The notes below the pieces were generated by a model that made no database searches, had not been told where the DNA came from, and saw only the letters and a program-made list of their open reading frames with translations. Shown here one piece after another: positions 15,848 to 63,280 of a DNA stretch of 64,000 bases. The position numbers and the translations under genes are program-made. The stretch lies in sequence record PV764938.1; one strand, given 5' to 3'. Numbering within the stretch: the stretch's first letter is position 1; each line of letters starts with the position of its first letter.

Positions 15848-16460
15848 TCAATTCTACATTCGATTGGTGAGCCAACGCTCGCTTGAGAAACCAGAAGTAG
15901 TCGCCTTTTACAAGTTCGTAAAGGGCGTGCTTCCTTCTGGCGTTCTTTCTAGCATCCAAGTCGAACGACCCAACTATGGTCTAGACACGGTTCGACTAAT
16001 CCATAAGACTGGTGAATCGGGTGCACCAGTATATGAAATTCCTCTATCGAGAAACCTTACTGAAAATGAATTCGATTTGGTAAAATATGCGTTCCAAGGA
16101 ATGGCGAAAGAGGGTCAGGAATTGGAGTCGAGCACAGTTGTAATACCGAATGCCCGCCACTTGCCGACTGGCGAATCTCATTTTGAACCCGATAATTACG
16201 ATATCTTTTGTGACACGTTGGCAAAGTACCAACACTCTAATTGGTGCTCTGAACGTACTGAAGCGGGATGGCGTTATGGTGCGGACCACAATCCGCAAGC
16301 CAAGACTTCTCCCTTGCTTCGACCATGGCATGACCTGCCATCGCATTATCAGCGTAAAGACAAAAACCTCCCCAATAAAATTTTCGAGATTCTCGAAGAC
16401 ATGGGATACGTGATCATCCCACGCACAGAACTAGACAAGCTTACGAAGAAAAAACGATGA
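15810..16460 (+). CDS. RyR-domain protein
   Basis: LAKYQHSNWCSER...GWRYG...KTSPLLRPWHDLP matches the RyR repeat consensus. Confidence 0.65.
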   Translation: MESKLTTPTKTDNQFYIRLVSQRSLEKPEVVAFYKFVKGVLPSGVLSSIQVERPNYGLDTVRLIHKTGESGAPVYEIPLSRNLTENEFDLVKYAFQGMAKEGQELESSTVVIPNARHLPTGESHFEPDNYDIFCDTLAKYQHSNWCSERTEAGWRYGADHNPQAKTSPLLRPWHDLPSHYQRKDKNLPNKIFEILEDMGYVIIPRTELDKLTKKKR

Positions 16461-16873
16461 AAATCTCCCAGCTAATCAAGCGACTAAAGATGACCAAAAA
16501 GCCAGAGCTTCAAAGGGAGTTGGTTCTTGAAGCCTGGCAGTCCTGCGATAACTTCTTTGTTGGTCTCCAGCTGAGCTGCGACGCCAATACGAAAATCCCC
16601 GTAAGTAAGATTCCTGAAATTGATGTTGATGATGGTTTCGAGTCTACATTTGCATTTGCGGATTTTATGACGCTTTATGATTCCGTGACCCAAGTCGATA
16701 TAACGCCGGAAGCTGCTCGTGAGCTAATCATCGAGGCTGCTTCTATTGCCGACTTTACTGAATGGAATACTTTCTACCGACGTATCCTCTTGAAAAAGCT
16801 GCAAGAAGACCTACCAATGGATGTCATTGCGCAGGTGCTTTCCGAGTTGACAGGTATCCAATTCGTGCTATAA
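16457..16873 (+). CDS. Stand-alone homologue of the N-terminal domain of phage ATP-dependent DNA ligases
   Basis: FFVGLQL...ITPEAARELI...EWNTFYRRILLKKL resembles the recalled LTGHAARDAI...WNxWYRRILxKDL segment; no KxDG. Confidence 0.5.
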   Translation: MKISQLIKRLKMTKKPELQRELVLEAWQSCDNFFVGLQLSCDANTKIPVSKIPEIDVDDGFESTFAFADFMTLYDSVTQVDITPEAARELIIEAASIADFTEWNTFYRRILLKKLQEDLPMDVIAQVLSELTGIQFVL

Positions 16874-16902: not shown

Positions 16903-18930
16903 ATGAATGCAGAACACATTCGCGAAGTGACCGTCGCGATTCTTGATGGCGACGTTTCGCCGACCGCGGCAGCAATTGTCGCAATCCTCAGCGTGGCAAG
17001 CGATGCCTATTACAATGTGGGCGAGGACGCTGAATCTTTCCAATTCCCCCAAATCGACCTGCAGACGGGCGAACTGCTCGAAACTGTCGCCGGCGCGGTT
17101 CCCCTGGATGCACTGATCTCCGATGACCAGTACGATTCGCTCGAACGTCAGCTCAAGGCAATCGATCCCAAGAACGCATTCTTCCTCGAAGTCGGCTCGG
17201 ACGTGCGCGGCGGCAAGGTTCCGCTGCCCTTCAAGATGGGTTCGCTGGACCAGGTCTACGAGGGCGACACTGAAAAGTGGGTTGCCCAGTACAAGCTGGA
17301 ACTCAGCCACTTCGTTATTTCCGACAAGCTCGACGGAACGTCCGTTGCACTGATCTATGATCGCAAGGGCAACTTCCTGAGCGCATTCTCTCGCGGCAAC
17401 GGCACGATGGGCGCCGACATTACGCGCCACATCAAAAAGCTCAAGTGCGTGCCGAAAAAGATCGAGAAGGGTCCGCTTCAGCTGCGCGCGGAAGCGATCA
17501 TCCCGATCGCAGAATGGCCCAAAGTCAAGGCTGAAACGCTTAGCCGCAGCGGTCGCGAATACAAAAACGCCCGCAACTATGTGGCCGGTAAGATGAACGC
17601 TTCGGAGTCCGATCCGGTATTCATCGACAACCTGCACGTGGTTATCACCAGCGTTGAATCCGACGAGCTCGGCAAGGTCCAGCAGCTGGAACTCGTACGC
17701 AACAGCGGCTTCCTCACCAACTATTACGAAGTTGCTGCCGGCGCATATCTGAACGACGATATGCTGACCAAGCACCTCACGGGTCGTCGCGCATACGATG
17801 GCGGCGGATCCAAGTACGAACTCGACGGCATTGTCCTGGATGTTGATGATGCTGCTGAACGCAAGGCGCTGCCGAAGACCACTTCGAGCCTGAACCCCAC
17901 GTTCGCTCGCAAGTTCAAGGTTGCCGATGCTGCAAACTACGCGGAGACCGAAGTCACTGACGTGTTGTGGCGTCTCTCAAAGGCCGGCTATGCAAAGCCC
18001 CGTGTCGAGATCAAGCCCGTTGATCTTGCTGGTGTGACCATCACCTACGCAACTGGCTTCAACGCTGCATTCATCCGCGACAACGACATTGGCCCTGGCG
18101 CTGTTATCAAGATCACACGCGCTGGCGACGTTATTCCGTATATCACGGGCGTCGTGAAGGGCTCCAAGGCGAAGATGCCGGATCAGTCGGTTCTCGGCAA
18201 AATGTCCTACACTCCGGGCGATGTTGATCTGGTGCTCGATGATCTCGACAGTCACCCTGACGTGCGCTATTATCGGATTCTCGATGCGTTCAAGACGCTC
18301 GATGTTCCGCACTTGCGCCAGTCCGCAGTTGAAAAGCTGATCGCCGACGGCTTTGATTCCGAAGCAAAGATCATCAAGGCCACTGAAGCCGAACTGAAGG
18401 CATCGGCTGGTGAAAGCGCCGGCAAAAAGATCTACGCGGGTCTTCGTGCAAAGCTGAACCCGGTCGATCTCGCACTGCTCGCTGGTGCTTCCCAGACGCT
18501 GGGACGCGGCATCGGTACGCGCAAGGCAACGCGCATTATCAAGGCGTTCGGAACCCTGGATGTTACGCTTGCTGAGCTTCTCACGGTCGACGGCTTCGAA
18601 AAGAAGACCGCTGAAACGTTCATGCGCAACTTGCCCAAGTTCAATGCGTTCCTTGCGGAAATCGCCGGCTACTATACAATTGCCGAAGCGGTAAAGCCGC
18701 CGGAAGATGGCGAACTGAAGGGCGTGGTCGCAGTGTTCACCGGCGTGCGCGATAAGGATCTTGAAGCCAAGATCGTTGCGAAGGCTGGTATCATCGGTTC
18801 GTCCGTCAACAAGGACACGACACACTTGGTCTGCAAGGATCCGTCCTCGGGTTCGAGCAAGATGAAGAAGGCCGCTGATCTCGGCGTTAAGATCATCGAC
18901 TTGTCCACTGCACAGGAGCTTTGGGGATGA
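16903..18930 (+). CDS. ligA: NAD-dependent DNA ligase
   Basis: Domain Ia YY...ISDDQYD, SDKLDG, SRGNG, ELDGIV, OB fold ITRAGDVIPYI, HhH, C-terminal BRCT (VFTG...VNKDTTHLV). Confidence 0.93.
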   Translation: MNAEHIREVTVAILDGDVSPTAAAIVAILSVASDAYYNVGEDAESFQFPQIDLQTGELLETVAGAVPLDALISDDQYDSLERQLKAIDPKNAFFLEVGSDVRGGKVPLPFKMGSLDQVYEGDTEKWVAQYKLELSHFVISDKLDGTSVALIYDRKGNFLSAFSRGNGTMGADITRHIKKLKCVPKKIEKGPLQLRAEAIIPIAEWPKVKAETLSRSGREYKNARNYVAGKMNASESDPVFIDNLHVVITSVESDELGKVQQLELVRNSGFLTNYYEVAAGAYLNDDMLTKHLTGRRAYDGGGSKYELDGIVLDVDDAAERKALPKTTSSLNPTFARKFKVADAANYAETEVTDVLWRLSKAGYAKPRVEIKPVDLAGVTITYATGFNAAFIRDNDIGPGAVIKITRAGDVIPYITGVVKGSKAKMPDQSVLGKMSYTPGDVDLVLDDLDSHPDVRYYRILDAFKTLDVPHLRQSAVEKLIADGFDSEAKIIKATEAELKASAGESAGKKIYAGLRAKLNPVDLALLAGASQTLGRGIGTRKATRIIKAFGTLDVTLAELLTVDGFEKKTAETFMRNLPKFNAFLAEIAGYYTIAEAVKPPEDGELKGVVAVFTGVRDKDLEAKIVAKAGIIGSSVNKDTTHLVCKDPSSGSSKMKKAADLGVKIIDLSTAQELWG

Positions 18931-21565: not shown

Positions 21566-24500
21566 ATGTCATACGTAGACGCGATTCACTCTAAACAAAC
21601 TGATGAAATCCACATTGTGGAGCGCATCAATGGCCAGCGCGTCTACAACGTTCTCCCAGCAAAGCACGTCTTTTACTATGAGGACCCAAGGGGTAGGCAT
21701 AAAACGATGTGGGGCGAACCTTGCACGAAGTATGAGACGAACGATAGCAAGAAATTCCAGAAGGAATTGAGAGCTTTCCAGGGTCTCGGCAAGAAGATTC
21801 ATGAGCATGATATCAACCCGATATTCAGGTGCTTGAGCGAGAACTATTTGGACGCTCCAGCCCCGGAACTCAACATCGGCTTTTTCGATATTGAGGTGGA
21901 CTTCGATCCACTCCGCGGCTACGCACCTACTAATGATCCCTTTGCGCCAATTACGGCAATTTCGCTTCACCTGTCTAGCACGTCCAGACTTGTAACATTT
22001 GTGTTGAAGCCTGAACTGCCACAGACGGACAAGGACTACCTAACTTGGGAAGCCGCTGAGGACATCGTAAACCAGTTCGACGACACGTACCTGTGTAACG
22101 ACGAGGAAGAACTGCTAAAGATGTTCCTGGATTCCATCGAGGACGCCGACGTCCTCAGCGGCTGGAACTCCACCGGTTTCGATATTCCCTACGTGGTGAA
22201 CCGCATTGAGCGAGTTCTCGGTAAGGATTATGCGAAGCGTATGTGCTTGTGGGGAATGCGACCAAAGAAGCGTAAGTACATCAAGTTCAAAAAGGAACAC
22301 GAGACATACGACTTGGTCGGTCGAGTGCATCTGGACTATCTGGAACTCTTCCAGAAGCATTCTAGTGCGGAACTTCACTCGTATAAACTGGATCACGTTG
22401 GTGAGGTTATTGTTGGCGAAAACAAAACCCCATATGAGGGCACATTGGACGCGCTCTACAAGCGGGACTTCAAGACGTTTATCGAGTATAACCGCCAGGA
22501 CACCTTGCTGCTCGTGAAGATCGACGCAAAGTGCCGATACATCGAACTGGCTAATCAGCTCGCCCACACCAACAGCGTTCTGCTTCCGACCACAATGGGT
22601 TCGGTTGCGCTTATCGAACAGGCTATCGTAAACGAAACATGGTCCCTGGGTATGCAGGTCATGTCTCGTCCGGAACGTGATTTCGGTTCCTCGTATGATT
22701 CAGGAAGCTTTGTCCACGACGACGAAGATGATGAAGAAGAGGACGATGACGACGGCGATAACAACGCTGTTGGTGCTTACGTGGCAGACCCCAAGAAGGG
22801 TATGCACAAGATGATTGGTTGCGTTGACATCAACTCACTGTATCCGTCCGCATTGCGTGCGCTGAACATGGGTCCTGAAACTCTGGTAGGTCAGATTCGA
22901 TCTGACCGAACTGACCAGCTTATTGCTTCGCGCATGGCTGCATCGGTTGCCGGTAAGAAGAAGGCAAAGGGTTCGAAAACGGATGCCTGGCACGGATTGT
23001 TTGCGAGTATTGAATACTCGTTGATGAACGAGAAAGCGCCGGATCGGTTGACGGTGGATTTCGAAGGTGGTGAAACGGCAACAGTTTCGGGTAAGGACCT
23101 GCACACCTACATTTTCGAATCAGATAAGGCCTACGCGATCTCCGCAAACGGTACGATCTTCCGAACAGATGTGAAGGCGATTATTCCGGGTCTGCTTGAG
23201 CGTTGGTATGCTGAGCGTAAACAGATGCAGGCAAAGCAGCTTCACTTCGAAGCCCTGTATAAGGGTGTGGAAATCCCCGGAGATATGATTCCTGAAATCG
23301 GAGTCATCGAGGAACGTCCCACAAACGACTTCCAGTCAGAGTATGCTCACGCTACGCTGGTAGAGCTGGTTGAAGCTAACGATGCTTCTGGAGTTCGGGA
23401 ATTCCTAGTTGAGAATAACCTGGTCATCGTGAAGGGTTGGGCAAAAGCAACCAAACCCGTAAATGAGTGGCACGATTCTCAGCGTGCATTCTGGGGCCAG
23501 CGCCAGCTCGCGCGTAAGATTCTGTTGAACTCCCTATATGGTGCGTTGCTCAACGAGGGTTGCCGATTCTACGATAAGCGTATTGGTCAGTCAGTAACGT
23601 TGACGGGCCGAAGCATTGCCAAGCACATGAATTCGAAGGTTAACGAGTGTATTACTGGTGAATACAAGTATGATGGCGAAGGTATTGTTTACGCTGATAC
23701 TGACTCCAGCTATTTCTCCGCTTATTCGACTTTGATTGCTGATCCGGAAACTGCGGCTCTCGCGGATGATAAGGACTCGATGCTTGCACTATACTTGAGC
23801 ATCGGCGATACAGTGAACGAATCGTTCCCGTATTTCATGAACGAAGCCTTCAATACGGGAATGGAGCGCGGCAAAATTATTGCTGCGGGTCTCGAGCTTG
23901 TTTCGCAGACTGGTATGTTCATCAAGAAGAAGCGTTACGCGGTTCTCAAATTCTGGGATGAATCCTCCGGTCGTTTGGACATTGAAAAGCCCGGTAAGAT
24001 CAAGGCAATGGGTCTCGATCTGAAACGCGCTGATACACCGAAGTTCATGCAGGACTTCCTCAGCAAGATCCTTTTGGAGATTCTGACTGGCGTTTCTGAG
24101 GAACACATTCTGAACGAAATCAAGGAGTTCCGTAACGAGTTCCGTAAGATGGAACCTTGGGATCAGGGAACACCGAAGAAGGTGAATGGTCTCACCGTCC
24201 ATCAGGAAAAGATGGATGCCTTCGACATGCGAATGGAACGCAATGTGTTTGGGAACCGCAGTGTTGAGAAGGAAAAGAAGGATCCTGTTCCGGGTCACGT
24301 CCGAGCAAGTATCAACTGGAACCGAATGAAAAAGGCAAACGGAGACAATTACTCAAGTGATATCACCGACGGCGGTAAAGTAATCGTCTGCAAGTTGCTT
24401 CCGAATCCAATGCGGATCAACAGCATTGCTTACCCTTACGACCAGCGCCACTTGCCGGAATGGTTCAAGGCATTGCCCTTTGACACTGAACTAATGGAAG

Positions 24501-24604
24501 AGACTATCATCGACAAAAAGGTTAACAACCTGATTGGCGTTTTGAAGTGGGACCTGAAGGCAACCCGTGAGGACACAACTTTCAATGACCTATTCACATT
24601 CTGA
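21566..24604 (+). CDS. Family B DNA polymerase (T4 gp43-like) with 3'-5' exonuclease
   Basis: Exo DIEVD, WNSTGFDIPY, YNRQD; pol DINSLYPS, KILLNSLYG, YADTDS, KKKRYA. Confidence 0.96.
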   Translation: MSYVDAIHSKQTDEIHIVERINGQRVYNVLPAKHVFYYEDPRGRHKTMWGEPCTKYETNDSKKFQKELRAFQGLGKKIHEHDINPIFRCLSENYLDAPAPELNIGFFDIEVDFDPLRGYAPTNDPFAPITAISLHLSSTSRLVTFVLKPELPQTDKDYLTWEAAEDIVNQFDDTYLCNDEEELLKMFLDSIEDADVLSGWNSTGFDIPYVVNRIERVLGKDYAKRMCLWGMRPKKRKYIKFKKEHETYDLVGRVHLDYLELFQKHSSAELHSYKLDHVGEVIVGENKTPYEGTLDALYKRDFKTFIEYNRQDTLLLVKIDAKCRYIELANQLAHTNSVLLPTTMGSVALIEQAIVNETWSLGMQVMSRPERDFGSSYDSGSFVHDDEDDEEEDDDDGDNNAVGAYVADPKKGMHKMIGCVDINSLYPSALRALNMGPETLVGQIRSDRTDQLIASRMAASVAGKKKAKGSKTDAWHGLFASIEYSLMNEKAPDRLTVDFEGGETATVSGKDLHTYIFESDKAYAISANGTIFRTDVKAIIPGLLERWYAERKQMQAKQLHFEALYKGVEIPGDMIPEIGVIEERPTNDFQSEYAHATLVELVEANDASGVREFLVENNLVIVKGWAKATKPVNEWHDSQRAFWGQRQLARKILLNSLYGALLNEGCRFYDKRIGQSVTLTGRSIAKHMNSKVNECITGEYKYDGEGIVYADTDSSYFSAYSTLIADPETAALADDKDSMLALYLSIGDTVNESFPYFMNEAFNTGMERGKIIAAGLELVSQTGMFIKKKRYAVLKFWDESSGRLDIEKPGKIKAMGLDLKRADTPKFMQDFLSKILLEILTGVSEEHILNEIKEFRNEFRKMEPWDQGTPKKVNGLTVHQEKMDAFDMRMERNVFGNRSVEKEKKDPVPGHVRASINWNRMKKANGDNYSSDITDGGKVIVCKLLPNPMRINSIAYPYDQRHLPEWFKALPFDTELMEETIIDKKVNNLIGVLKWDLKATREDTTFNDLFTF

Positions 24605-24967: not shown

Positions 24968-25708
24968 ATGCGTGAAAAACTACTCGACGTTATCAAGCAC
25001 ACAAGCGGCCTGGGATTTGTTGAATCCGTCCGCGTAACTGGTACCGACACCAGCACCGTGTTTGAAGCAATGGATGACGAGCGCACCATCATCATCCGCG
25101 CAGAACTGAAGCAGCCTGAGCCTTCGCTCAAGGGCGAGTTCGGTATGCGTAACCTGGGCCTGCTCCAGGGTCTGCTGAACCACTCCACGTTCAAGACGGA
25201 CGAAGCAAAGCTTGAAATCAAGCGCAAGGAACGCAACGGTGTTGACGCTCCGGAACAGCTTGAGTTTTCCGTCAAGGGCGCAAAGGACAAGGCAGATTTC
25301 CGTTTCATGAGTGCATCGCTTCTGCCGGCTCAGGCACAGCTCAAGCACAACACCTGGGACGTTACGGTTGATCCGACCGACTCCAAGATCCAGGAATTCG
25401 CTTCGCTCGCAGGCATGTACTCGAGCATTGAGCAGTTCTTCTCCGTTGCTACGGAAGATGGCGCTCTGCAGTTCCAGATTGGTGACCCGAACGGTTCTAA
25501 CCACTCCGCAAGCATGACTTTTGCTGACGCGGTAACTGGCGAAATCAAGACCAGCATGTTCTGGCCGATCAACCAGGTTCTCACTGTACTCAAGGTCGGC
25601 AAGGGTGAAAACCCACAGTTGCAGATCATGAATCTCGGCGCCCTGCGTATTAACCTGGAAACCGAACACGCGAAGTACAGCATGATTCTTCCTGCTCGTA
25701 AGAAGTAA
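24968..25708 (+). CDS. Putative DNA polymerase sliding clamp (gp45-like)
   Basis: 246 aa, clamp-like alternating beta/alpha pattern, GEFGMRNLGLLQGLL, position after the polymerase. Confidence 0.6.
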   Translation: MREKLLDVIKHTSGLGFVESVRVTGTDTSTVFEAMDDERTIIIRAELKQPEPSLKGEFGMRNLGLLQGLLNHSTFKTDEAKLEIKRKERNGVDAPEQLEFSVKGAKDKADFRFMSASLLPAQAQLKHNTWDVTVDPTDSKIQEFASLAGMYSSIEQFFSVATEDGALQFQIGDPNGSNHSASMTFADAVTGEIKTSMFWPINQVLTVLKVGKGENPQLQIMNLGALRINLETEHAKYSMILPARKK

Positions 25709-25814: not shown

Positions 25815-26348
25815 ATGAATATTCGCACTGCAAATATACCAATCAAACAATTTCGGCTTTCCGAGCTAGAGGAACTCTGGCTCATGATCTGCTTTGAAAT
25901 CAATAGGTATTCCGGAAACCACGACTTTGAATTTCGCCGTGATTTCCTCGATAAGCTGAACTTCCCAGACGAAACACCGTTCCAACGTATTCGTGCAAAT
26001 GGCGTGACCTCAAACATCGTCACGGATGCTCTGTATTCGTCCAATATTGGATTCTATCGAAGGCTCCACGACACGATTATCGATACGATTTTTTACTTGG
26101 ACAATCGTATGCACGAAGTCTCCATTAAGGAACTCGAAGACATATATGGAGTCGGATCCCTGCACGCGCGAATGTATCACCACCGCGTGCGACCCTACGA
26201 GGACCCAATTGTCCAGCAGACCGCGATCCTCAATAAGGCGAATCGCAACTGGCTCCGTGAGCAAGGATTCTACGTACCGAATCGTATGGATTGGCGTGAG
26301 TATCGGCAATACGAACAAACGTTTCTGATTGCTCGTGGTTTCATTTAG
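25815..26348 (+). CDS. Hypothetical protein
   Basis: GGAGG RBS; ends in TAG. Confidence 0.55.
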   Translation: MNIRTANIPIKQFRLSELEELWLMICFEINRYSGNHDFEFRRDFLDKLNFPDETPFQRIRANGVTSNIVTDALYSSNIGFYRRLHDTIIDTIFYLDNRMHEVSIKELEDIYGVGSLHARMYHHRVRPYEDPIVQQTAILNKANRNWLREQGFYVPNRMDWREYRQYEQTFLIARGFI

Positions 26349-26418: not shown

Positions 26419-26802
26419 ATGCTTCAAGAATCAACGATCTGGGTCACATTCAGTAAGGAAGGTCTGCACAAGTATCCGGCCGCTCTTGATGATCCAAATC
26501 TCGCAACTGGTGATGAGTACGACGTTAGCTTTTTGGGTTACATCCATCGTCACATCTTTGGCTTCAAGGTAGAAATTCAGGTATTCCACGACGATCGTGA
26601 TATCGAGTTTATCCAGTTCAAGCGTTGGCTGCAAAGCCTCTATGAGGGCGAACTCAAGCTGGACTTCAAGTCCTGTGAGATGATTGCAACGGATCTCTAC
26701 AAGCAGATTCAGGCTCGTTATCCGGGTCGTGTAACGACAATCACAGTCGACGAAGACGGCGAGAACGGCGCAACGCTGAAGTTCTCGGGAGCGGCGCTTT
26801 GA
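26419..26802 (+). CDS. queD: QueD-like 6-carboxytetrahydropterin synthase (T-fold)
   Basis: GLHKYP, HRHIF, DDRDIEFIQFK, SCEMIA; clustered with folE and queE. Confidence 0.75.
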   Translation: MLQESTIWVTFSKEGLHKYPAALDDPNLATGDEYDVSFLGYIHRHIFGFKVEIQVFHDDRDIEFIQFKRWLQSLYEGELKLDFKSCEMIATDLYKQIQARYPGRVTTITVDEDGENGATLKFSGAAL

Positions 26803-27890
26803 ACATTTTCATTATGGCATTGGAGCCACTGGAAACCCGTTACACCGGGCAGTGGTTCAACGGAATTCCAAAGCTTCTCAAGGATGCTGCGGAATCCTCA
26901 AACAAGAAGGCTACAATCCATAATGTGGCCGGCGAACAGACTGCGACGAAGGTCACCGAAGGCGCATTCCTGAATTTCACGGCCACTAATATCTGGAAGA
27001 ACACCCAGATCAACAAGCTGGCTAATTGGTTTTCCGATGGCACGGTAAAGCCTGGGGATAAGATCCTCTTCACGGATGCCTGGCACACCGGTGTTATCCA
27101 AGCCAAGTACATGAGCGAACTCACGGACATTCCCGTAGAGATTCACAGCATGTGGCACGCTGGTTCTTATGATCCCCAAGACTTCTTGGGTCGTAAGATC
27201 GTCGACAAGCGTTGGACTTACTCGGTAGAACGTTCCTATTTCTTTGCGTCGGATTTCAATTACTTCGCAACGGAATTCCACAAGGAACTCTTCTTGGAGA
27301 AACTCTTCCGCGCACAGGTTCCCACTGATGGTCTGTTCTTGCAGCCTGAGGATTCCAAGTTCGTTATTTCGGGTCAGCCCCACAACGAACTCGTTGAAAA
27401 GCTCCAGCCTTTCCGCAATCTCGAGAAGCGCAATCTCGTATTGTTCCCGCACCGTGTTGCACCGGAAAAGCAACCCGAGATCTTTAGGGATCTGGCCCAG
27501 CATATGCCGGACGTTGAGTTCGTAATCTGCCAGGAACAGAATCTCACAAAGGACGAATATCATCGTCTGCTTGGTGAGGCGAAGATCGTGTTCAGCGCGA
27601 ACCTGCAGGAAACCCTGGGAATCTCCGCGATGGAAGGTGTACTCGTTGACACACTTCCGATGGTTCCAGATCGCCTCAGCTACTCGGAAATGTACTACGA
27701 CGCGTTCCTGTATCCGAGCGCGTGGACGGAGTCCTGGGACTCTTACGTTGCGAATCGCGCACAAGTTATCAATTGGATCCGCGATCTGCTGGAGAACCCA
27801 CTTCGTGGAGCAATCCTTCCAATGCAGCGTGCAAAGCTACTCGAAGAGTTCCTGAGTGCCGGTCCAATGATTGATAAGTTGCTAGGATAA
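26799..27890 (+). CDS. GT-B (GT4-like) glycosyltransferase, GTDC1/QTMAN-like
   Basis: FPHRVAPEKQPE and ETLGISAMEG (E-x7-E) motifs; overlaps the queD stop. Confidence 0.8.
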   Translation: MNIFIMALEPLETRYTGQWFNGIPKLLKDAAESSNKKATIHNVAGEQTATKVTEGAFLNFTATNIWKNTQINKLANWFSDGTVKPGDKILFTDAWHTGVIQAKYMSELTDIPVEIHSMWHAGSYDPQDFLGRKIVDKRWTYSVERSYFFASDFNYFATEFHKELFLEKLFRAQVPTDGLFLQPEDSKFVISGQPHNELVEKLQPFRNLEKRNLVLFPHRVAPEKQPEIFRDLAQHMPDVEFVICQEQNLTKDEYHRLLGEAKIVFSANLQETLGISAMEGVLVDTLPMVPDRLSYSEMYYDAFLYPSAWTESWDSYVANRAQVINWIRDLLENPLRGAILPMQRAKLLEEFLSAGPMIDKLLG

Positions 27891-27947
27891 TCTGGTTAAT
27901 ACCCCACGGCAATAAGTAGTTGTGGGGTATTCAACCAAGAGGTCATT

Positions 27948-28316
27948 ATGGCAACGTCATTGAAAATAAACGATGCTTTCCGGAACAAGCATATTCCGGA
28001 AAGATTTTTGAATTCACTATCGCAGTCATCGCTGGATATGTTCGAGAATCAAGTCTGCGTTTGCCTCTTGGCTACGCATGATGGATATTCGGCAAAGTAC
28101 GAAGTCGAAGATGAGATTCGTGCCGTTTTTATGGCACGGCTCGACACATGGATTAGAGAGTTTGCAACAGTTGGAACATGGTCCGTTGTGAGTCATGGAA
28201 CCAATGTCGATGCAAACGGAAACCATCAATGCATCTTGGGATTCATCTTTGCCAATTTTGCAGATTCGGAAAACTTTCTGAAGCATTTCCTGATAGTTGA
28301 GAAACTCAAGAGTTAA
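27948..28316 (+). CDS. Hypothetical protein
   Basis: GAGGT RBS; preceded by an inverted repeat at about 27893-27935. Confidence 0.55.
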   Translation: MATSLKINDAFRNKHIPERFLNSLSQSSLDMFENQVCVCLLATHDGYSAKYEVEDEIRAVFMARLDTWIREFATVGTWSVVSHGTNVDANGNHQCILGFIFANFADSENFLKHFLIVEKLKS

Positions 28317-28325
28317 CACCAGATA

Positions 28326-28355
28326 TTGACAACTCAGAGTGTTTCTAAATATACT
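28326..28355 (+). promoter_or_regulatory. Sigma70-like promoter with an ACTCAGAGT palindrome (also contains TAAATA)
   Basis: TTGACA-18 nt-TATACT; palindrome 28332-28340; upstream of folE. Confidence 0.6.
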
Positions 28356-28413
28356 GTGGACATAAAACGCTCCCACAAATAACAACAAAAACAATAACTT
28401 AGGAGTTATATTA

Positions 28414-29142
28414 ATGGAAAATGAAGTCAAACTTACCAGCGGTGCTGGGCAAGAGACGAAGCCGGTTAGCGAAGTCATCAAGGGTCGTATCAAGGCCGCG
28501 AATGCAAGCTTTTTCAGCAACGACAACATCAGCGCATTCATCCAGCCGGGTGAAAAGGAAAAGCTCATCGACGAGCTGACCACAAAGTTCGAAGGTGTTC
28601 TGGAATCTCTCGTCATCGATATCGAGAATGATCCAAACAGCGCGGACACAGGTCGTCGTCTCGCAAAGATGTATGTAAGGGAACTCTTCGAGGGCCGTTA
28701 CGCAAATGCTCCATCCGCTACGGCATTTCCAAATGAGGGCGATGCGAAATACGAGGGAATGCTCGTGGTTCGCTCCGAACTCAAGTCGGTTTGCTCTCAC
28801 CATCACCAACCAGTGACTGGTACCGCTTACATTGGTATCATCCCCGGAAAGAAAGTGATTGGTCTCTCCAAGTACACCCGTATCGCACAGTGGCACGCTC
28901 GTCGTGGAACTCTCCAAGAAGAACTCTGCCAGCGTATCCAGAAGGATATTGCAGCGATTACGGAAACTCCAAACGTTGCCGTATACATTGTGGCTTCGCA
29001 CGGTTGCTGCGAAAACCGCGGTATCATGGCAAAGAACTCCAAGACCCAAACAACGGTTCTCGGTGGTGACTTCAAGCGTTCTGACTTGAAGCAGGAATTC
29101 TTCGACAACATCAAGCTACAGAGCAACTTCAGCTGTGAGTAA
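28414..29142 (+). CDS. folE: GTP cyclohydrolase I
   Basis: DTGRRLAKMY, SVCSHHHQP, GLSKYTRI, LQEEL, HGCCENRG. Confidence 0.93.
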   Translation: MENEVKLTSGAGQETKPVSEVIKGRIKAANASFFSNDNISAFIQPGEKEKLIDELTTKFEGVLESLVIDIENDPNSADTGRRLAKMYVRELFEGRYANAPSATAFPNEGDAKYEGMLVVRSELKSVCSHHHQPVTGTAYIGIIPGKKVIGLSKYTRIAQWHARRGTLQEELCQRIQKDIAAITETPNVAVYIVASHGCCENRGIMAKNSKTQTTVLGGDFKRSDLKQEFFDNIKLQSNFSCE

Positions 29143-29500
29143 TTTGATCCTTCTCAGGGACCGTGTCGACTATACGGTGCAAAATCTGCTCATATCCAAA
29201 TACGAGCATATGTTGCAGCACATCCTAAAATATCATACCCTGTGTATGAGGGATGATGTTTTCGCGGTCCTTGCGTTGGTCTATGATTCCGTTTGTGAGG
29301 AACATTACTTGGCGAACATTAAAAAGTTCGTCGCCTATGCAAAGCTGGTAGCTCCCCAGGTTTTGGAAATCTACGAGATTCAAAACTACATTGATACAAT
29401 GCGTGGTTTGTTCGGCTCCGAATATTACCTGCATTTCTCACTCAGGGATCTACACGAACGCAAATATGCGCTGGAAAAAGAATGCGATGAGTACGCCTGA
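29135..29500 (+). CDS. Hypothetical helical protein
   Basis: ORF overlapping both neighbours. Confidence 0.5.
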   Translation: MSNLILLRDRVDYTVQNLLISKYEHMLQHILKYHTLCMRDDVFAVLALVYDSVCEEHYLANIKKFVAYAKLVAPQVLEIYEIQNYIDTMRGLFGSEYYLHFSLRDLHERKYALEKECDEYA

Positions 29501-29894
29501 CATATCCTTCTACTATTCGGATCCGTCCGAAGCTCATCACAATGCGTATCGTGAATTCAAAGATGCTGATGCGCCCGACTTCGTTGATTCCCAACTGTTC
29601 AAGGATCTCTCCACTACGGAGTTTGTCCAATTGAATGAGGAATGGGACGAAGTTCTTGGAACCAAAACGTGCAATCTCGACGTTCGTGGTCAGGTCTTCC
29701 AACTACTTGAGGCCGACTACAACTATTTGCTTCGTTGGTTCCACAATGAGCATCGCAAGGCAAACACACGGCATGGTACCTACATCATGCTGTATTTGAC
29801 CGAATCCGGTTATGCCTGGAAGCTCAGTGATTGGTTTTTCACGCGCCTTCTCACAATTCCCGACAACCTCAACGATCTCTTTGATTTTGGTTAA
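29487..29894 (+). CDS. Hypothetical protein
   Basis: ATG 29487 overlapping the previous gene end. Confidence 0.55.
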   Translation: MSTPDISFYYSDPSEAHHNAYREFKDADAPDFVDSQLFKDLSTTEFVQLNEEWDEVLGTKTCNLDVRGQVFQLLEADYNYLLRWFHNEHRKANTRHGTYIMLYLTESGYAWKLSDWFFTRLLTIPDNLNDLFDFG

Positions 29895-29950
29895 GAATAT
29901 TGAATTTTTAGGAAAGGATGTCATACCATCGGAGAAAATAGAGGTATGAC

Positions 29951-30901
29951 ATGGATATTATGCTCGACGCTTTTGATGCCCCATCGCCTGAAGAAATCAA
30001 AGAAAAGAAAAAGCTCCGAAAGAAAGAGCTAGTCAAAGGTAAAAAGCCTATCTATGTTGATAGGGAATCTATCGGCGAGCAATCCGGCGACGTTGCCAAC
30101 CGACCTAACAAACGTATCTCTCCCAAGTTCAACATCAATAGTGGGATTGATCAGTTTGTGTCGAAAGGCTATCGCTTCGGTTCATTCTTCATTAAGAGTG
30201 TGGACACTCCAAGCTTGTGTTTTCGACTTTCGAAGCAAGAGTATGGCTCTCACGGCAAGCTTTCTAAGAAATTCAATACTGATAACAATGATCCTGGTAA
30301 TGGGGCCGATTTCCCCATCAAGGATGACACAATCTCTGATTTCGGTTTCAGAGACAAAGATAAGTTTCACATGTTCTTGCATTCTCCAGTAGAAGTGGAT
30401 GATTCCCTCGAATCACTAATTTTTGAACTGGAATTTGACTCCGATACGATGTTGTCCAAAAGCGACATTCGTATGACTATGAGTAGCCCAAGTGCCGAAG
30501 ACTTGCTTAAGGTAAGAGCTGAACGTCTCGCATCGAGAACTACTCGCCCGGACTTCGAAGCTTATCGGATTGAAGTAGAACGCTTGACGAAGCTTACTCT
30601 CCAAGCTGTGCCGCATAAAATTAAGAATCATGAACTGTCGACGCAACCTGGCATGACAGTGGATCATATCTTTTCGGTATACCACGGTTACCGTTATGGT
30701 GTCCCAGCGCACGTAATCGCACACCAATGCAATTTGCAATGGTTGGTTGGTACCGGACCAGACGGTAATTTTTCGAAGAACAAAGCAAGCTGGCAGACGC
30801 CATTTGAGCTAGTTAAGGCTTATTGCGAAGCTACAGGTGAGGACAAGACTGTCGTAGCAAGCTCCATTAACAAAGAGCTGTATTTCGACGACCAGCTTTA
30901 A
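29951..30901 (+). CDS. Putative HNH-type (homing) endonuclease
   Basis: C-terminal VDHIFSVYHGY...AHQCNLQWL...NFSK; AT-richer than neighbours; inserted between folE and queE. Confidence 0.6.
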   Translation: MDIMLDAFDAPSPEEIKEKKKLRKKELVKGKKPIYVDRESIGEQSGDVANRPNKRISPKFNINSGIDQFVSKGYRFGSFFIKSVDTPSLCFRLSKQEYGSHGKLSKKFNTDNNDPGNGADFPIKDDTISDFGFRDKDKFHMFLHSPVEVDDSLESLIFELEFDSDTMLSKSDIRMTMSSPSAEDLLKVRAERLASRTTRPDFEAYRIEVERLTKLTLQAVPHKIKNHELSTQPGMTVDHIFSVYHGYRYGVPAHVIAHQCNLQWLVGTGPDGNFSKNKASWQTPFELVKAYCEATGEDKTVVASSINKELYFDDQL

Positions 30902-30954
30902 ATTGAATTTTATCTACCTGTTCTGTTAGGATGGGTAGAAATTAGGAGTTCCAA

Positions 30955-32073
30955 ATGTTTGGTAAAAACGAAATCGTTGGCAAGAAGTATTTCAAAGATG
31001 CCGACAAGCAACAGATGTTCGTGACCTCGATGTTCATGACTCTGCAGGGCGAAGGCCCTTATCGCGGTATGCCCGCGTTTTTCATTCGTCTCGCAAAGTG
31101 CAACCTGGCTTGCAGCTTCTGCGATACATTCTTCGATGACGGTGACTGGTTGACCTTCGATCAAATCGAAGAGCGCATCGAAACAACCATCGATGATTTC
31201 TACAAGAGCATCGATATGGATCGCCCGGACTGGACTAAAACAATTTATGAAGATACCGTTATGGTATCTACTGTAATAAACCAATCAATGTTTGCTGATA
31301 CTAAGGTGAAATTTGATTCGAACAGAATCAAAGCTGACACTACTTATGCCGATATTCTTAATATGAATATTGAAGATGGTATCATTTCAAAAGAAGAAGC
31401 AATGGTTCTGAAATTATCTGCATCAGATAGTTTACATGACGCTGTTATGCAGAAGGTTTATTCTCCTAGAAAAGTAAAAACCAAAAAGCGCATGGTTCTC
31501 GTAATGACCGGCGGTGAACCCATGTTGCAGGACAACATTGGTCCCTTCCTCGAGCGTATGGCTGGCATTTTCGAGAACACGCAGATTGAGTCCAACGGCA
31601 CGCAGAACACTGCGATTCCTGAATCCACAACTTTGGTGATCTCGCCGAAGTGTGCGGAGAAGAAGGATTCCGTAACGGGCGAAATGATTGCCACCAAGTA
31701 CCTGACTCCTCGTAAGGAAGTGCTTGAACGCGCAAGCTGCTTGAAGTTCGTCATGGAAGCCAACTCGGATTCCCCATATAGCGTGGTTCCGGATTGGGCG
31801 CACGAATGGGCCAAGGTCTTCAACAGACCGATCTTTGTAAGCCCAATGAACGAGTACAACGCGATCCCGCAGAAGTCCAAGCAAAAGCGTGCAACGAGCA
31901 ATCAGATCACGCTGGACGAGCGTTCTACGGTCGATGAAGTCATCAGCTTCTGGGAACCTGGTCTCCTCAATATGGCGGAGAACCAAAAGAACCACGAATA
32001 TGCGGCTCGCTATTGTGTCACGCACGGCTTCATTCTGAATCTCCAGATTCACCTGTATGCGAGCCTGGCATGA
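30955..32073 (+). CDS. queE: 7-carboxy-7-deazaguanine synthase (radical SAM) with an internal AT-rich insertion
   Basis: TLQGEGP, FIRLAKCNLACSFCDT, VMTGGEP, IESNGT, LNLQIH. Confidence 0.9.
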   Translation: MFGKNEIVGKKYFKDADKQQMFVTSMFMTLQGEGPYRGMPAFFIRLAKCNLACSFCDTFFDDGDWLTFDQIEERIETTIDDFYKSIDMDRPDWTKTIYEDTVMVSTVINQSMFADTKVKFDSNRIKADTTYADILNMNIEDGIISKEEAMVLKLSASDSLHDAVMQKVYSPRKVKTKKRMVLVMTGGEPMLQDNIGPFLERMAGIFENTQIESNGTQNTAIPESTTLVISPKCAEKKDSVTGEMIATKYLTPRKEVLERASCLKFVMEANSDSPYSVVPDWAHEWAKVFNRPIFVSPMNEYNAIPQKSKQKRATSNQITLDERSTVDEVISFWEPGLLNMAENQKNHEYAARYCVTHGFILNLQIHLYASLA

Positions 32074-45970: not shown

Positions 45971-47341
45971 ATGAAACTCTATAACAGCATGAGCAAACAA
46001 CTCGAGAAGTTTGTCCCAGCGGACGAACGTCGGGTGACCATGTATGTTTGCGGCCCCACAGTATACCAGGCCCCACATATCGGCAATCTTCGGCCGGCTG
46101 TGGTCTTCGATACGCTTTATCGATACCTGCGCGACAAATACGGGGCTGACCACGTCGTTTATGCGAGCAATTTCACGGACATCGACGATAAAATCATCAA
46201 AAAGGCCAACGACAATCGGACGTCCATCGACAATATCACGGAAGAAGCCATCGGCCATTACCAGCGTGATCTGCTCAGCCTGAACGTGTTGGGTCCGAGT
46301 GATCGTCCATATGCGACCAAGTATGTGGATGATATGATCCGGATGATCGATCGTCTCCAGGAAAACCATTACGCTTATGAGGTGAATGGGAACGTTTGGT
46401 TCTCCGTCGCCGATAGCAAGCACGTGAGTTTCCAACCGGATCGCGATAACGCAGGACTCGACGAAACATTTACGGCGGACAAAAAGGATCCCAGAGATTT
46501 TGCGCTGTGGAAAGCAGCAAAGCCAGGCGAACCCTTCTGGGAAAGCCCTTGGGGTCCAGGTCGTCCAGGCTGGCACATTGAATGCTCAGCTATGATTCGG
46601 GCAACTCTCGGTGACACCATCGACATTCACGGTGGTGGGTCCGATTTGATGTTCCCACATCATGAGGCCGAAAACGCTCAAAGCTTTGCCGTTACTGGAA
46701 AGCCCTTGGCCAACTATTGGCTTCACAATGGCATGATGAACATTGGGATGGCCAAAATCTCCAAAAGCCTCGGCAATTCCATCTCCATGCACGATCTCAA
46801 TCAGAGATTCCCAGGAGAATCCATTCGGTTGTTCCTGATGATGACACATTATCGGAGCACGATGAATTTTGATCATGGCTTGATCAGTGACGCTCATGCG
46901 CTGATGAATAAGTTGTATCGTGTGCTCTACAAGTACCGGGATGAACTGCTCGACCCCGCCGAAGTCGAACATGATGTGTTTGTGGTGAAGGCGTTCGAGC
47001 AGGACATGAATACTGCGGAAGTCATAACACGGCTTCAGCAGTTGGCCACAAAGGCCCTAAAGGAGTCCCATCCGTCGATTCGCCAGAAGCTGTTGACACA
47101 GTTGATCAAGGGCGGACAACTCCTGGGTGTACTCAACTACACACCAGAGGATTGGTTTCATATTGGTGTTAACCATGTTGAAATTGAGGAGTTGATTTCG
47201 GCACGGAACTTTGCTAGGGCGGCAAAGGATTGGCAACTTGCGGATATCTATCGCAAGTCGCTAAACGACAAAGGTGTCCATCTGGACGATCTCGATGGTG
47301 AGACGTTCTGGCGGACAATCAAAGGCGACGTTAGGCAATAG
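45971..47341 (+). CDS. cysS: Cysteinyl-tRNA synthetase
   Basis: MYVCGPTVY, HIGN, FTDIDDKII, DFALWK, GRPGWHIECSAM, HGGGSDLMFPHHE, KISKSLGN; AGGAG RBS. Confidence 0.95.
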   Translation: MKLYNSMSKQLEKFVPADERRVTMYVCGPTVYQAPHIGNLRPAVVFDTLYRYLRDKYGADHVVYASNFTDIDDKIIKKANDNRTSIDNITEEAIGHYQRDLLSLNVLGPSDRPYATKYVDDMIRMIDRLQENHYAYEVNGNVWFSVADSKHVSFQPDRDNAGLDETFTADKKDPRDFALWKAAKPGEPFWESPWGPGRPGWHIECSAMIRATLGDTIDIHGGGSDLMFPHHEAENAQSFAVTGKPLANYWLHNGMMNIGMAKISKSLGNSISMHDLNQRFPGESIRLFLMMTHYRSTMNFDHGLISDAHALMNKLYRVLYKYRDELLDPAEVEHDVFVVKAFEQDMNTAEVITRLQQLATKALKESHPSIRQKLLTQLIKGGQLLGVLNYTPEDWFHIGVNHVEIEELISARNFARAAKDWQLADIYRKSLNDKGVHLDDLDGETFWRTIKGDVRQ

Positions 47342-47355
47342 GAAGGAAAAACGTT

Positions 47356-47952
47356 ATGGAATTTATCGCAGGCTTGTCCTTTTTCTGGGTAGGCATCGTG
47401 TTCACGATTGCTGCTCTCGCAACTCTCATCTCCATCGGCACCAACAGCTACTGGTGGGCTTTCGGCATCGTCATCGGCACGATCGCATTCTCCCAGGGCA
47501 CCACTGACTACGGCATTCTCGATTTCGTCGCACGGAACTGGTACGGCACGCTGATCAGCACGGCCGTTTACGTTGCACTGGGTCTCGGCTGGGCTACGTT
47601 CGCATGGTTCCTGCACTTGACCAAGATCAAGGCCAAGTACCAAGAAGTACGTGAAAACTTGCTGCCGCAGTTCCTCGCATCCAAGAACGTCCAGGAACTC
47701 ACCGCCGATCTTCACGACGAGTTCCGCAAGTTCATCTACTCGAACGCCGGCACGGTTCTTCCGAAGGAACAGCTCGCAGTCAACAAGAGCGTCATGGTCG
47801 GTCAGGTTATCCTGTGGCCGTTCAAGCTCGGCGCGTTCGTCCTCGGTGACGCACTCAAGTACATCGTCGACGCATTCCTCGGACTGTTCGGCGGCTTCTT
47901 CAAGCGCATCCAGAAGTTCGTATTCCGTAACTTCCCGGAACTGCAGGCTTAA
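47356..47952 (+). CDS. Membrane protein (3-4 TM segments)
   Basis: Long hydrophobic N-terminal segments; ILWPF motif. Confidence 0.7.
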   Translation: MEFIAGLSFFWVGIVFTIAALATLISIGTNSYWWAFGIVIGTIAFSQGTTDYGILDFVARNWYGTLISTAVYVALGLGWATFAWFLHLTKIKAKYQEVRENLLPQFLASKNVQELTADLHDEFRKFIYSNAGTVLPKEQLAVNKSVMVGQVILWPFKLGAFVLGDALKYIVDAFLGLFGGFFKRIQKFVFRNFPELQA

Positions 47953-47982
47953 TCGGTCGGGGGCTTTGGCCCCCACCACTCT

Positions 47983-48058
47983 CGCGGTTTAGCTCAGTTG
48001 GTAGAGCAGCGATCTCTAAAATCGTTTGTCACGGGTTCGAGCCCCGTAACCGCGGCCA
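47983..48058 (+). tRNA. Amber-suppressor tRNA, anticodon CUA (tRNA-Trp-like scaffold)
   Basis: 76-nt cloverleaf: acceptor CGCGGTT/AACCGCG, D arm GCTC/GAGC, anticodon stem GCGAT/ATCGT with loop CT-CTA-AA (CTA at 48016-48018), T arm ACGGG-TTCGAGC-CCCGT, G73, encoded CCA. Confidence 0.93.
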
Positions 48059-48068
48059 AAGGTGAAGC

Positions 48069-48386
48069 ATGATCAGATGGACTGAAATGCCGCCGTTCGT
48101 TGCTGACCAGTTAAATCCACACTTTCGCGTTGGGGTTGAACTGAATGCAAAAGAAGTTATTCGGCGCTGGCCAGCTGATTTTGGTTTTGCAGTTTTTGAC
48201 AACGTCAAAACAAGCAACGACGGTTTCCAAAGCGTTTACACGCTTTCGAAAAATTTAGTTGGGTTCAGTGGGCGATTGGTAATAGCACCAATTGAAACTG
48301 GTGATGGGGCTAGATGCTTTTTGTTTGCCCTTGAAACTGATGAGGGCCGCAAATGGCTCACGATGATGAAATTAACATACGGGTGA
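48069..48386 (+). CDS. Hypothetical protein (distant AxxFKL-terminal family)
   Basis: AAGGTG RBS; KWLTMMKLTYG. Confidence 0.5.
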   Translation: MIRWTEMPPFVADQLNPHFRVGVELNAKEVIRRWPADFGFAVFDNVKTSNDGFQSVYTLSKNLVGFSGRLVIAPIETGDGARCFLFALETDEGRKWLTMMKLTYG

Positions 48387-48389
48387 TCT

Positions 48390-49142
48390 ATGGAACCGCT
48401 ATTCGACATTAACGGCTTGATGTTTTGGAGCCAGAAGGAAATTGCTCTGCGTGAGCGTTTCAAGGCCCAGATCGCCGAAGGAGTAGCAGAATTCCTCCAC
48501 GGTCAGAATCCCATGTTCCTGCAGAACTTCCTGCAGGTGGAAGCTCCGCTGCTTACACCACGTTCCGCATTGAATCCCAACTATACGGACGAGGATATTT
48601 GGGCACAGGAAACGCTGGAAGTCAGCGGCTCCCATGAGCTTGCGCTGCGGCCGGAAACTACTCCAGGTTCCTACACGTATGCGGTGCACCTGTTGAACTC
48701 CCACAGCGCCCACAAGCCTCCGATGGTCGTATGGCAGGCCGGTAAGAGCTTCCGGCGTGAAAACGAACAACCGTCCAAGCACATGCGGTTGAAGGAATTC
48801 TACCAACAGGAGTTCCAGTGCGTTTATGCGGCTGATACCATGAACGATTACCAGGAAGCCTCGCTGGAACCCATGCGCAAACTGCTTGGTGATATCATCG
48901 GCTTGCCCACGCGCATCGTAGAGTCCGATCGTTTGCCCTCCTATAGCAAGCGCACCATGGACATTGAAGTCGACAACGGCGACAAGTGGATGGAAGTCTG
49001 CTCGATTAGCCTGCGCACGGACTTCCCTGAAAAGTTTAAGTTCGTCCACAAGGGCGTTCAGAAGGAGAAGGATCTCCTCGTGCTTGAGATCGCCGTTGGT
49101 CTCGATCGCGTCGTATACAATTACCTGCAGAGGACGAAATAA
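48390..49142 (+). CDS. Class II aminoacyl-tRNA synthetase catalytic core, GlyRS(alpha2)-like, lacking an anticodon-binding domain
   Basis: Motif 1 VEAPLLTP, LRPETT, motif 2 QAGKSFRRE...RLKEFYQQE, MEVCSIS.R.DF, motif 3 EIAVGLDR; ends 10 aa after motif 3. Confidence 0.8.
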   Translation: MEPLFDINGLMFWSQKEIALRERFKAQIAEGVAEFLHGQNPMFLQNFLQVEAPLLTPRSALNPNYTDEDIWAQETLEVSGSHELALRPETTPGSYTYAVHLLNSHSAHKPPMVVWQAGKSFRRENEQPSKHMRLKEFYQQEFQCVYAADTMNDYQEASLEPMRKLLGDIIGLPTRIVESDRLPSYSKRTMDIEVDNGDKWMEVCSISLRTDFPEKFKFVHKGVQKEKDLLVLEIAVGLDRVVYNYLQRTK

Positions 49143-56883: not shown

Positions 56884-57019
56884 TTTCTGGCTAAATAAAC
56901 AGCGTACATATTTACGCGAGCGAGGAATGGATTGTCAACCAGTTCTACTAAAATATTGACGTTTCAGTTCCTGATTTACTAAAATGCAACATAACGAAAA
57001 TCCTAATAGGAGAAACTCT

Positions 57020-57262: not shown

Positions 57263-57271
57263 GGAGAAACA

Positions 57272-58173: not shown

Positions 58174-58234
58174 ATTGACGCTCATTAACCCTGTGTGTTC
58201 TAATACCTGGAGTAGTAATATTCCAGGTATTTTT

Positions 58235-59844: not shown

Positions 59845-59902
59845 TAAACGGTAAATACTTGGTTAGGGAAAGCCTAACGTTCCTTTTTGTTAGGAGAATG
59901 CC

Positions 59903-63273: not shown

Positions 63274-63280
63274 TTTCGCC

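Follow-up and report, generated by a model that had tools for sequence, protein, structure and literature searches.

The closest described relatives of the gene cluster analysed here are found in phages that encode DpdL, which has been described as a derivative of QueD with the motif CxxxHGH changed to LxxxHRHxF, and proposed to decarboxylate 7-carboxy-7-deazaguanine (CDG) to yield 7-deazaguanine (Cui, Hutinet et al., Nucleic Acids Res 2023, PMC10516641). DpdL phages encode FolE, QueD and QueE together with a DpdA, and are without QueC; the modified nucleoside 2'-deoxy-7-deazaguanosine (dDG), fully replacing deoxyguanosine, is known by measurement from phiST and its relatives alone, all of which are without a glycosyltransferase (GT) of the kind discussed below (PMC10516641). 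The present cluster occupies positions 26419–32073 of a window of 64,000 nucleotides, i.e., the whole stretch of DNA that was analysed, which corresponds to bases 124001–188000 of the circular 469,473-bp record of Sinorhizobium phage Phosso (PV764938.1; isolation host S. meliloti). Positions below are those of the window unless the record is named. The cluster encodes DpdL, a GT, FolE and QueE, and it is very probable that the region constitutes a DpdL-type deazaguanine DNA-modification module. The four open reading frames (ORFs; 26419–26802, 26799–27890, 28414–29142 and 30955–32073) are all present on the plus strand, in agreement with the GenBank annotation of Phosso, and no broken genes were seen in the module region.

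The first of these genes, dpdL (26419–26802, plus strand), encodes a protein of 127 residues that reads LGYIHRHIF, which fits the DpdL signature. It is 36% identical to CGPG_00067 of phiST over 124 columns (E 2.5e-17 by blastp; 6e-12 by tblastn), 53% identical to ACP17 gp125 and 59% identical to the PA5oct orthologue, and matches phrog_17812 at 9e-34. The LxxxHRHxF signature occurs in 75 of 76 collected DpdL homologues, and CxxxHGH in none of the 76. A direct link to QueD is harder to see in our comparisons, where Pfam PTPS gave no match to the protein even at E≤10, and an hhalign alignment of 75 DpdL sequences with only four phage QueD sequences was weak (E 0.0024, probability 12%); the T-fold ancestry of DpdL rests on the published HHpred probability of 99.9% that connects the phiST protein to the QueD family (PMC10516641). 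By signature and homology, the 127-residue protein is DpdL, i.e., a candidate CDG decarboxylase, and the label queD-like given to it in a preliminary description of the window, which had missed the published DpdL, is replaced accordingly. The translational overlap noted there is real, and involves dpdL rather than queD: the dpdL stop codon TGA lies at 26800–26802 and the GT gene starts with TTG at 26799, giving an overlap of 4 nt. The GT N-terminus encoded from this TTG is kept in homologues.

As previously described, folE and queE follow the GT gene, and both ORFs are identified by family matches. The folE product (28414–29142, plus strand; 242 residues) is a GTP cyclohydrolase I that matches Pfam GTP_cyclohydroI (PF01227) at 1.2e-37, NCBIfam FolE at 1.6e-45 and phrog_2197 at 4e-45. 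The queE product (30955–32073, plus strand; 372 residues) is assigned as a radical-SAM CDG synthase from its match to the 'QueE-like' phrog_2076 (4.6e-47) and its CxxxCxxC cluster motif; the NCBIfam QueE models, at best 2.5e-18, fall below their cut-offs. Phosso QueE aligns with ACP17 QueE in two blocks, with an insertion of about 82 residues (residues ~80–161; 31192–31437) that sits shortly past the iron-sulfur cluster motif, and long versions (~340 residues) are also seen among relatives. A canonical QueD is encoded outside the window at record bases 372298–372741, about 216 kb from the module, and matches Pfam PTPS at 3.9e-20. The canonical QueD proteins of Phosso (L012 49298–49741), ACP17 (L015 7395–7871) and phiST (L016 4481–4975) all read HCxxxHGY at the CxxxHGH site, with a tyrosine for the second histidine.

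A DpdA-family protein is also encoded outside the window. A tblastn search of the Phosso genome with ACP17 gp123 and phiST DpdA3 gave no matches, and the gene was reached only through gp168 of PA5oct, whose gene immediately precedes that of the PA5oct GT, with fold and profile comparisons as the next step. The Phosso homologue of gp168 (2e-57) has 549 residues, is encoded at record bases 323216–324865 beside primase and helicase genes, and belongs to a DpdA-like family with 627 matches and without Pfam assignment. The protein itself has no Pfam match at E≤1, tRNA-guanine transglycosylase (TGT) included, and no match in the PDB by sequence or profile search. Its predicted structure (predicted local distance difference test, pLDDT, 89) retrieved only two PDB folds at E<1e-3, archaeosine TGT (1iq8_A) and a bacterial TGT (4q8q), both at 8.5e-5 and probability 1.0, with low template-modelling (TM) scores of 0.34–0.48. 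With moderate probabilities of 57–77%, hhalign linked the family both to ACP17 gp123 (194 columns, E 1.9e-5) and to phiST DpdA3 (E 1e-4). ACP17 gp123 is in turn 33–37% identical (~1e-38) to the DpdA region of KVP40-like Vibrio phages (34% and 2e-38 for VH7D), and is similarly related to ORFs of the Xanthomonas phages X1 and BUDD that are named 'queuine tRNA-ribosyltransferase'. Judging from these fold and profile matches, the 549-residue protein is probably a divergent transglycosylase of the DpdA/TGT family that groups with the DNA-type DpdA proteins of phages; phiST DpdA3 was likewise detected by HHpred alone (PMC10516641). A 316-residue ORF upstream of queE (29951–30901, plus strand) was considered as the missing DpdA and rejected, being without a Pfam match at E≤10 or a PHROG or PADLOC match, and absent from all 80 related loci described below.

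Because QueD and the DpdA-family protein are encoded elsewhere in the genome, Phosso therefore holds the complete published dDG-type set, with these two members displaced from the cluster. Phosso shares with phiST FolE, QueD, QueE, a DpdL with the LxxxHRHxF signature, a DpdA-family enzyme and the lack of QueC, and in both phages deazaguanine genes lie beside a DNA polymerase. Unlike in phiST, QueD and DpdA are scattered in the Phosso genome; the DpdA-like gene lies inside the cluster in most relatives, and directly upstream of the GT gene in ACP17 and PA5oct. The transglycosylases differ in length, with 259 residues in the short DpdA3 of phiST, 416–424 in ACP17 and BUCT-ZZ01, and 540–549 in the very divergent proteins of Phosso and PA5oct. 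Among the 735 annotated features of the genome there is no QueC or QueF, an absence by annotation only, for which no aimed profile search was made, and neither later queuosine genes nor a TGT are annotated. The 7-deazaguanine pathway proposed in the preliminary description is thus borne out by FolE, QueE, DpdL, QueD and the DpdA-family gene, and its statement that the window is without QueC, QueF and DpdA agrees with the annotation of the first 49 kb and with the ORFs of the cluster. As for dpdA, queC and tgt in the rest of the genome, to which it had also pointed, a DpdA-family protein is found there together with QueD, and QueC and TGT are unannotated.

The gene that distinguishes Phosso and six other lineages from phiST is the GT gene (26799–27890, plus strand), which encodes 363 residues. 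An AlphaFold2 model built on 42 homologues reached a pLDDT of 91.4 and a predicted TM score (pTM) of 0.89, and Foldseek comparison with the PDB retrieved BshA, GlgM, PglA, MshA and glycogen/starch synthases (E 1e-9 to 1e-7, probability 1.0), the top 50 matches being bacterial, archaeal and plant enzymes of GT4/GT5 type. BshA, MshA, GlgM and PglA have the GT-B fold (TM ~0.6) and the E-x7-E glutamates in common with the Phosso protein, but are only 10–15% identical to it, and the Phosso context is a DNA-modification module. Among viral models (BFVD), the GT of ACP17 was the best match by far (E 1.7e-28, TM 0.84–0.89). Invariant in the 42 homologues are E271 and E279 (E-x7-E), H218, R219 and K224, with the spacing and positions expected of GT4 enzymes; a separate set of invariant, aromatic-rich positions marks the N-terminal acceptor domain. 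The model allows a confident assignment of the protein as a GT-B, GT4-like glycosyltransferase, and because of this model and the invariant E-x7-E and H/R/K positions, it looks like a catalytically intact enzyme. A T4-type DNA glucosyltransferase was rejected as the identity of the protein, since alpha-GT and beta-GT are absent both from its Pfam matches and from its top 50 PDB fold matches.

Sequence families place the enzyme less readily. With Pfam Glycos_transf_1, which has a cut-off of 26.4 bits, the Phosso GT reaches only 12.8 bits and the BUCT-ZZ01 orthologue 26.5 bits; this is the sole named relevant Pfam family that recurs, matched at E≤0.01 by 7 of the 42 relatives. NCBIfam, PHROGs and PADLOC gave nothing relevant, and sequence and profile searches of the PDB returned no glycosyltransferase among their matches. 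By these measures the family is a divergent offshoot of GT4-like enzymes. It is also widespread, as the protein search returned at least 8000 candidates, generic relatives included, the best 120 of which are at least 50% identical to the Phosso GT and in many cases lie on contigs of 200–480 kb; a confirmed relative is encoded in 580 viral contig stretches.

In the preliminary description, the enzyme was likened to human GTDC1 (QTMAN) on the basis of similar peptide segments. These segments are present in the translation, but they fall in the generic nucleotide-sugar domain of the GT4 core, and no tool reproduced the parallels. A GTDC1-named family was absent from Pfam at E≤10 for the GT and at E≤0.01 for the 42 relatives, and from NCBIfam, and GTDC1 was likewise absent from the PDB sequence, profile and Foldseek matches, where BshA, MshA and GlgM are the nearest solved structures, and from the BFVD matches. 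GTDC1 is a GT4 enzyme whose N-terminal part has a Pfam family to itself, and a likeness to it is not supported by these family and fold searches, which fall short of a head-to-head comparison. GTDC1 belongs, like the Phosso enzyme, to the broad GT4 class, and it acts on a 7-deazaguanine derivative; its target is queuosine in tRNA, which the Phosso gene set cannot make.

This bears on the idea that the pathway puts a glycosylated queuosine-like base into phage or host tRNA, in the manner of eukaryotic GTDC1/QTMAN. Phosso does encode dozens of tRNAs, including those for Asp, Asn and His with GUN anticodons, and the GT falls in the same broad GT4 class as GTDC1. Against such a role stand the unannotated QueC, QueF and later queuosine genes, the grouping of the transglycosylase with phage DNA DpdA proteins, the lack of any match to a GTDC1-named Pfam family or solved structure, and the position of the module between the DNA polymerase and clamp genes and other DNA-metabolism genes. 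In PA5oct, which has an orthologue of the GT beside DpdL, the DNA itself appears to be modified at G (PMC12191111). The tRNA alternative raised in the preliminary description is for these reasons highly improbable.

In other phages, the GT is strongly linked to the deazaguanine genes. A tblastn survey of 50,697 phage records found DpdL in 28 and the GT in 23, and 18 records have both, as compared with ~0.013 expected if the two occurred independently. In all 18, the distance between the two genes is at most ~3 kb. Eleven of these records are PA5oct-like, and the 18 represent seven lineages, viz. Phosso, PA5oct-like phages, ACP17, the T4-like cyanophage BUCT-ZZ01 (Synechococcus), the Xanthomonas phages X1 and BUDD, and the Burkholderia phage BCSR5. 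In five lineages (ACP17, PA5oct-like, X1, BUDD and BUCT-ZZ01), a DpdA-type gene adjoins the DpdL–GT pair. A second survey covered 80 IMG/VR contigs with a GT homologue at 49–68% identity, and phmmer found DpdL in 71, a DpdA-like protein in 63, FolE in 56 and QueE in 51; in seven of the nine contigs without DpdL, the available sequence stops under 410 bp ahead of the GT gene. DNA polymerase B (PolB) is present in 59 and the clamp in 57 of the 80 loci, always upstream and on the same strand, FolE lies downstream of the GT in 56, and the usual order is PolB, clamp, DpdA-like, DpdL, GT, FolE, QueE. The GT is thus a conserved third partner of DpdL and DpdA, beside replication genes, and its linkage to que genes, on which the preliminary description had made its reading depend, recurs in other phages.

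The gene order differs between the lineages. In ACP17, whose GT is 38% identical to that of Phosso, it is QueD-x-FolE-x-DpdA-GT-DpdL-QueE (x denoting one unassigned gene), and in PA5oct (43% identity) a DpdA-like gene, the GT gene and dpdL are followed by three ORFs and queE; GT, DpdA and DpdL are contiguous in X1 and BUDD. The BUCT-ZZ01 operon (L101 1596–8530) runs QueE, phosphoribosyltransferase, x, QueD, FolE, a second GT, DpdA, DpdL, GT. Its phosphoribosyltransferase is of purine type (PF00156, 3e-13), and such an enzyme is also found in the module of another related contig (L004); possible roles are the salvage of released guanine and the activation of a free base. The second GT of BUCT-ZZ01 matches Glyco_trans_1_4 at 3.4e-5 and has homologues in X1 and BUDD.

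Because the GT recurs with DpdL and DpdA in lineages of differing gene order, it probably works in the deazaguanine pathway. A reaction sequence can be outlined in which FolE, QueE and the distant canonical QueD would convert GTP to CDG, DpdL would decarboxylate CDG to 7-deazaguanine, and the divergent DpdA/TGT-family transglycosylase would exchange guanine in the phage DNA for the pathway product. The GT would then move a sugar from a nucleotide-sugar donor onto the deazaguanine-derived base, either on the DNA or before insertion, so that the modification in GT phages would be more elaborate than the plain dDG found in the phiST group, which has no GT. The sugar might be placed on a precursor, on another atom of the base, or on the C7 carbon, which DpdL could conceivably expose in an electron-rich state; alternatively, DpdL in GT phages may differ in its action from what has been proposed for phiST. 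With its two GTs, BUCT-ZZ01 might extend the modification to a disaccharide. For this explanation as a whole, a dDG-type module with a GT that glycosylates a deazaguanine-derived base, we see even chances. A glycosylated deazaguanine in DNA as the end product is plausible and would be new, at odds that just fall short of even, and we suggest, more tentatively still, that the DpdA–DpdL–GT phages at large replace guanine with a sugar-bearing 7-deazaguanine derivative. What the data show are the identities of the genes, the conserved triad and its location beside replication genes, and the pathway role of the GT, its acceptor and sugar, and the sequence of steps are inferred.

Several observations weigh against glycosylation of the base. 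A 7-deazaguanine has no hydroxyl group at C7, and it is hence unclear where an O-glycosyltransferase would attach the sugar. The proteins of the GT family are acidic (median isoelectric point 5.55), which gives no hint of DNA binding, and the 4-nt overlap with dpdL is not conserved, the gap between the two genes having a median of 253 nt and being 20 nt or less in only 3 of 71 loci. The decarboxylase activity of DpdL is only proposed, also in the literature. Within each lineage, the synteny may be plain inherited gene order. Because about half of the DpdL lineages are without the GT, namely the phiST group, RHph_I1_18, Bakedbeans, D479, Ahp1_CNU-2021 and MA9V-3, the enzyme is dispensable for the basic pathway.

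The lack of an evident O-glycosylation site and the acidic family would also fit a rival reading, in which Phosso carries plain dDG like phiST, and the GT serves something else (e.g., a different DNA base, a protein of virion or host, or a molecule of the host envelope) and stands beside dpdL merely by inherited gene order in the replication region. The combination of FolE, QueD, QueE, DpdL and DpdA without QueC is the published dDG set (PMC10516641), six DpdL lineages manage without the GT, and its closest solved structures, BshA, MshA and GlgM, are of enzymes that use small molecules and not DNA. Such a coincidental association is nevertheless less likely than glycosylation of the base in view of the seven lineages in which the GT adjoins DpdL or DpdA in differing contexts (T4-like, PA5oct-like, 470-kb jumbo and cyanophage). 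At E<1e-3, the GT was found outside DpdL phages in one lineage only, which itself has a DpdA-like gene; these are weak matches at 25% identity in jumbo phages of the PhiXhv-12 type, from Xanthomonas and Erwinia. In Xanthomonas phage PhiXhv-12 (L098, L099), the weak homologue lies beside GlmS and a BshB-like deacetylase, with a 568-residue DpdA-like gene ~94 kb away and no DpdL found, and there may be some other sugar or amino-sugar modification around a DpdA-type enzyme in this phage.

For a pyrimidine base of the DNA as acceptor, there is no evident source of hydroxylated pyrimidine. The hydroxylated-pyrimidine acceptor was rejected on the sole ThyA homologue of Phosso, which is canonical (419 bits in Pfam) and keeps Asp where 5-hydroxy-dCMP synthases have the Asn that marks them among ThyA homologues (PMC13326640). 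The T4 alpha- and beta-GTs and the arabinosyl and hexosyl 5-hydroxycytosine systems (PMC13326640) would follow the same strategy as Phosso if the sugar were post-replicative and anti-restriction; these pyrimidine DNA GTs are, however, outside the top 50 structural matches of the Phosso GT, which also matched none of their Pfam families, and the Phosso partner genes make a purine analogue. A second glycosyltransferase of 290 residues is annotated in Phosso outside the window (record 223052–223924; L010 52–924) and matches, faintly (E 0.026), the Pfam family of TET-associated DNA glycosyltransferases (TAGT). The Phosso annotation includes no dioxygenase of TET/JBP type.

The small-molecule character of the structural neighbours is also what would be expected if the GT acted on a soluble intermediate, giving a pterin glycoside, the alternative named in the preliminary description, by way of the FolE product and the PTPS-like DpdL, or a sugar conjugate of free CDG or deazaguanine. 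DpdL is described as a descendant of the pterin-handling PTPS/QueD family (PMC10516641), FolE is encoded just downstream of the GT in most relatives, and the GlmS and BshB-like deacetylase of PhiXhv-12 resemble a pathway for a small-molecule conjugate. Yet DpdL always accompanies QueE and a DpdA-type DNA transglycosylase, and formation of dDG in phiST needs a decarboxylase, for which DpdL is the sole proposed candidate (PMC10516641). A pterin glycoside would also be of no evident use to a lytic phage, and a conjugate that is later inserted in DNA would merge with glycosylation of the deazaguanine base as outlined above. A soluble product as the end of the pathway is consequently rather improbable.

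Published experiments bear on the GT phages in two ways. Expression of ACP17 dpdL and dpdA without the GT gave no dDG in E. coli, and it was suggested that other enzymes are perhaps needed (PMC10516641); the missing GT may explain this result, with the reservation that our labels for the ACP17 dpdA and dpdL ORFs may differ from the ORFs chosen in that study. DNA of PA5oct resists several restriction enzymes with G in their sites, which points to a modified G, and END nucleases, which sense modified G, also restrict the phage; the preprint leaves the base chemically undefined (2025, PMC12191111). Both the pathway, described in 2023, and the presence of its genes in ACP17 and PA5oct were already known. 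What is new, to our knowledge and in the literature searched, is the GT4-like enzyme as a conserved member of the module, and the sugar-bearing guanine analogue that this would imply, of which we found no report in DNA. Known 7-deazaguanine modifications bear small groups, and as far as we know and could find in the literature, sugar decoration of phage DNA has been reported on pyrimidines only; we know of no earlier report of a glycosylated purine in DNA. If present, a sugar on deazaguanine would merge two DNA-modification strategies, and would be expected to alter the visibility of the DNA to restriction, CRISPR, glycosylase and END-type defences. The DpdA–DpdL–GT triad is common, and is present in well-studied phages such as PA5oct.

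In Phosso, the module genes are all on the plus strand and directly downstream of the annotated genes for a family-B DNA polymerase (21566–24604, plus strand) and a sliding clamp (24968–25708, plus strand). The remaining ORFs between the assigned genes are hypothetical and also on the plus strand. One of 122 residues between the GT gene and folE (27948–28316) has no Pfam, NCBIfam, PHROG or PADLOC match, is present in 1 of the 80 related loci and appears to be lineage-specific filler. Downstream of folE are two further ORFs that are not conserved and have no family match, one of 121 residues (29135–29500) with no tblastn match in the 80 loci, and one of 135 residues (29487–29894) found in a single locus. 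PADLOC gave zero matches for the module proteins. Promoter-like sites showed no excess over shuffled sequences in a promoter and terminator scan, and operon boundaries are therefore left unclaimed.

Between the clamp gene and dpdL, an ORF annotated as 'glycosylase' (25815–26348, plus strand) encodes a 177-residue protein that resembles Ogg-type helix-hairpin-helix (HhH) glycosylases, and whose membership in the module is uncertain. It matches phrog_11575 at 1.4e-10 and shares 30% of its residues (E 1e-10) with an Ogg-HhH protein (PF22175) whose gene, in a related contig, precedes that of the GT by 2 kb; there was no tblastn match to it in the 80 IMG/VR loci. Past the shared GVG hairpin, the Phosso protein has Leu and Asn where the Ogg-HhH relative has Lys and Asp, and if these positions are catalytic, the protein may bind bases without cutting. 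Elsewhere, Phosso encodes another Ogg-HhH protein (record 242538–243122).

Other features of the genome lie apart from the module. Two adjacent plus-strand ORFs in the window (16457–16873 and 16903–18930) are both annotated as DNA ligase, and may represent a split or two-part enzyme. A minus-strand block at 55870–64000, which extends beyond the window (record 179870–193014), encodes four proteins annotated as radical-SAM enzymes, along with an oxidoreductase and several hypothetical proteins. Genes related to translation are found at window positions 45971–49000 and record bases 420000–469000, and include aminoacyl-tRNA synthetases (those for Cys and Ser in the window), translation factors and ribosomal protein S21. 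The genome has more than 60 tRNA genes, among them one named tRNA-Pyl(cta) and, at window positions 47983–48058, one annotated with an undetermined anticodon.

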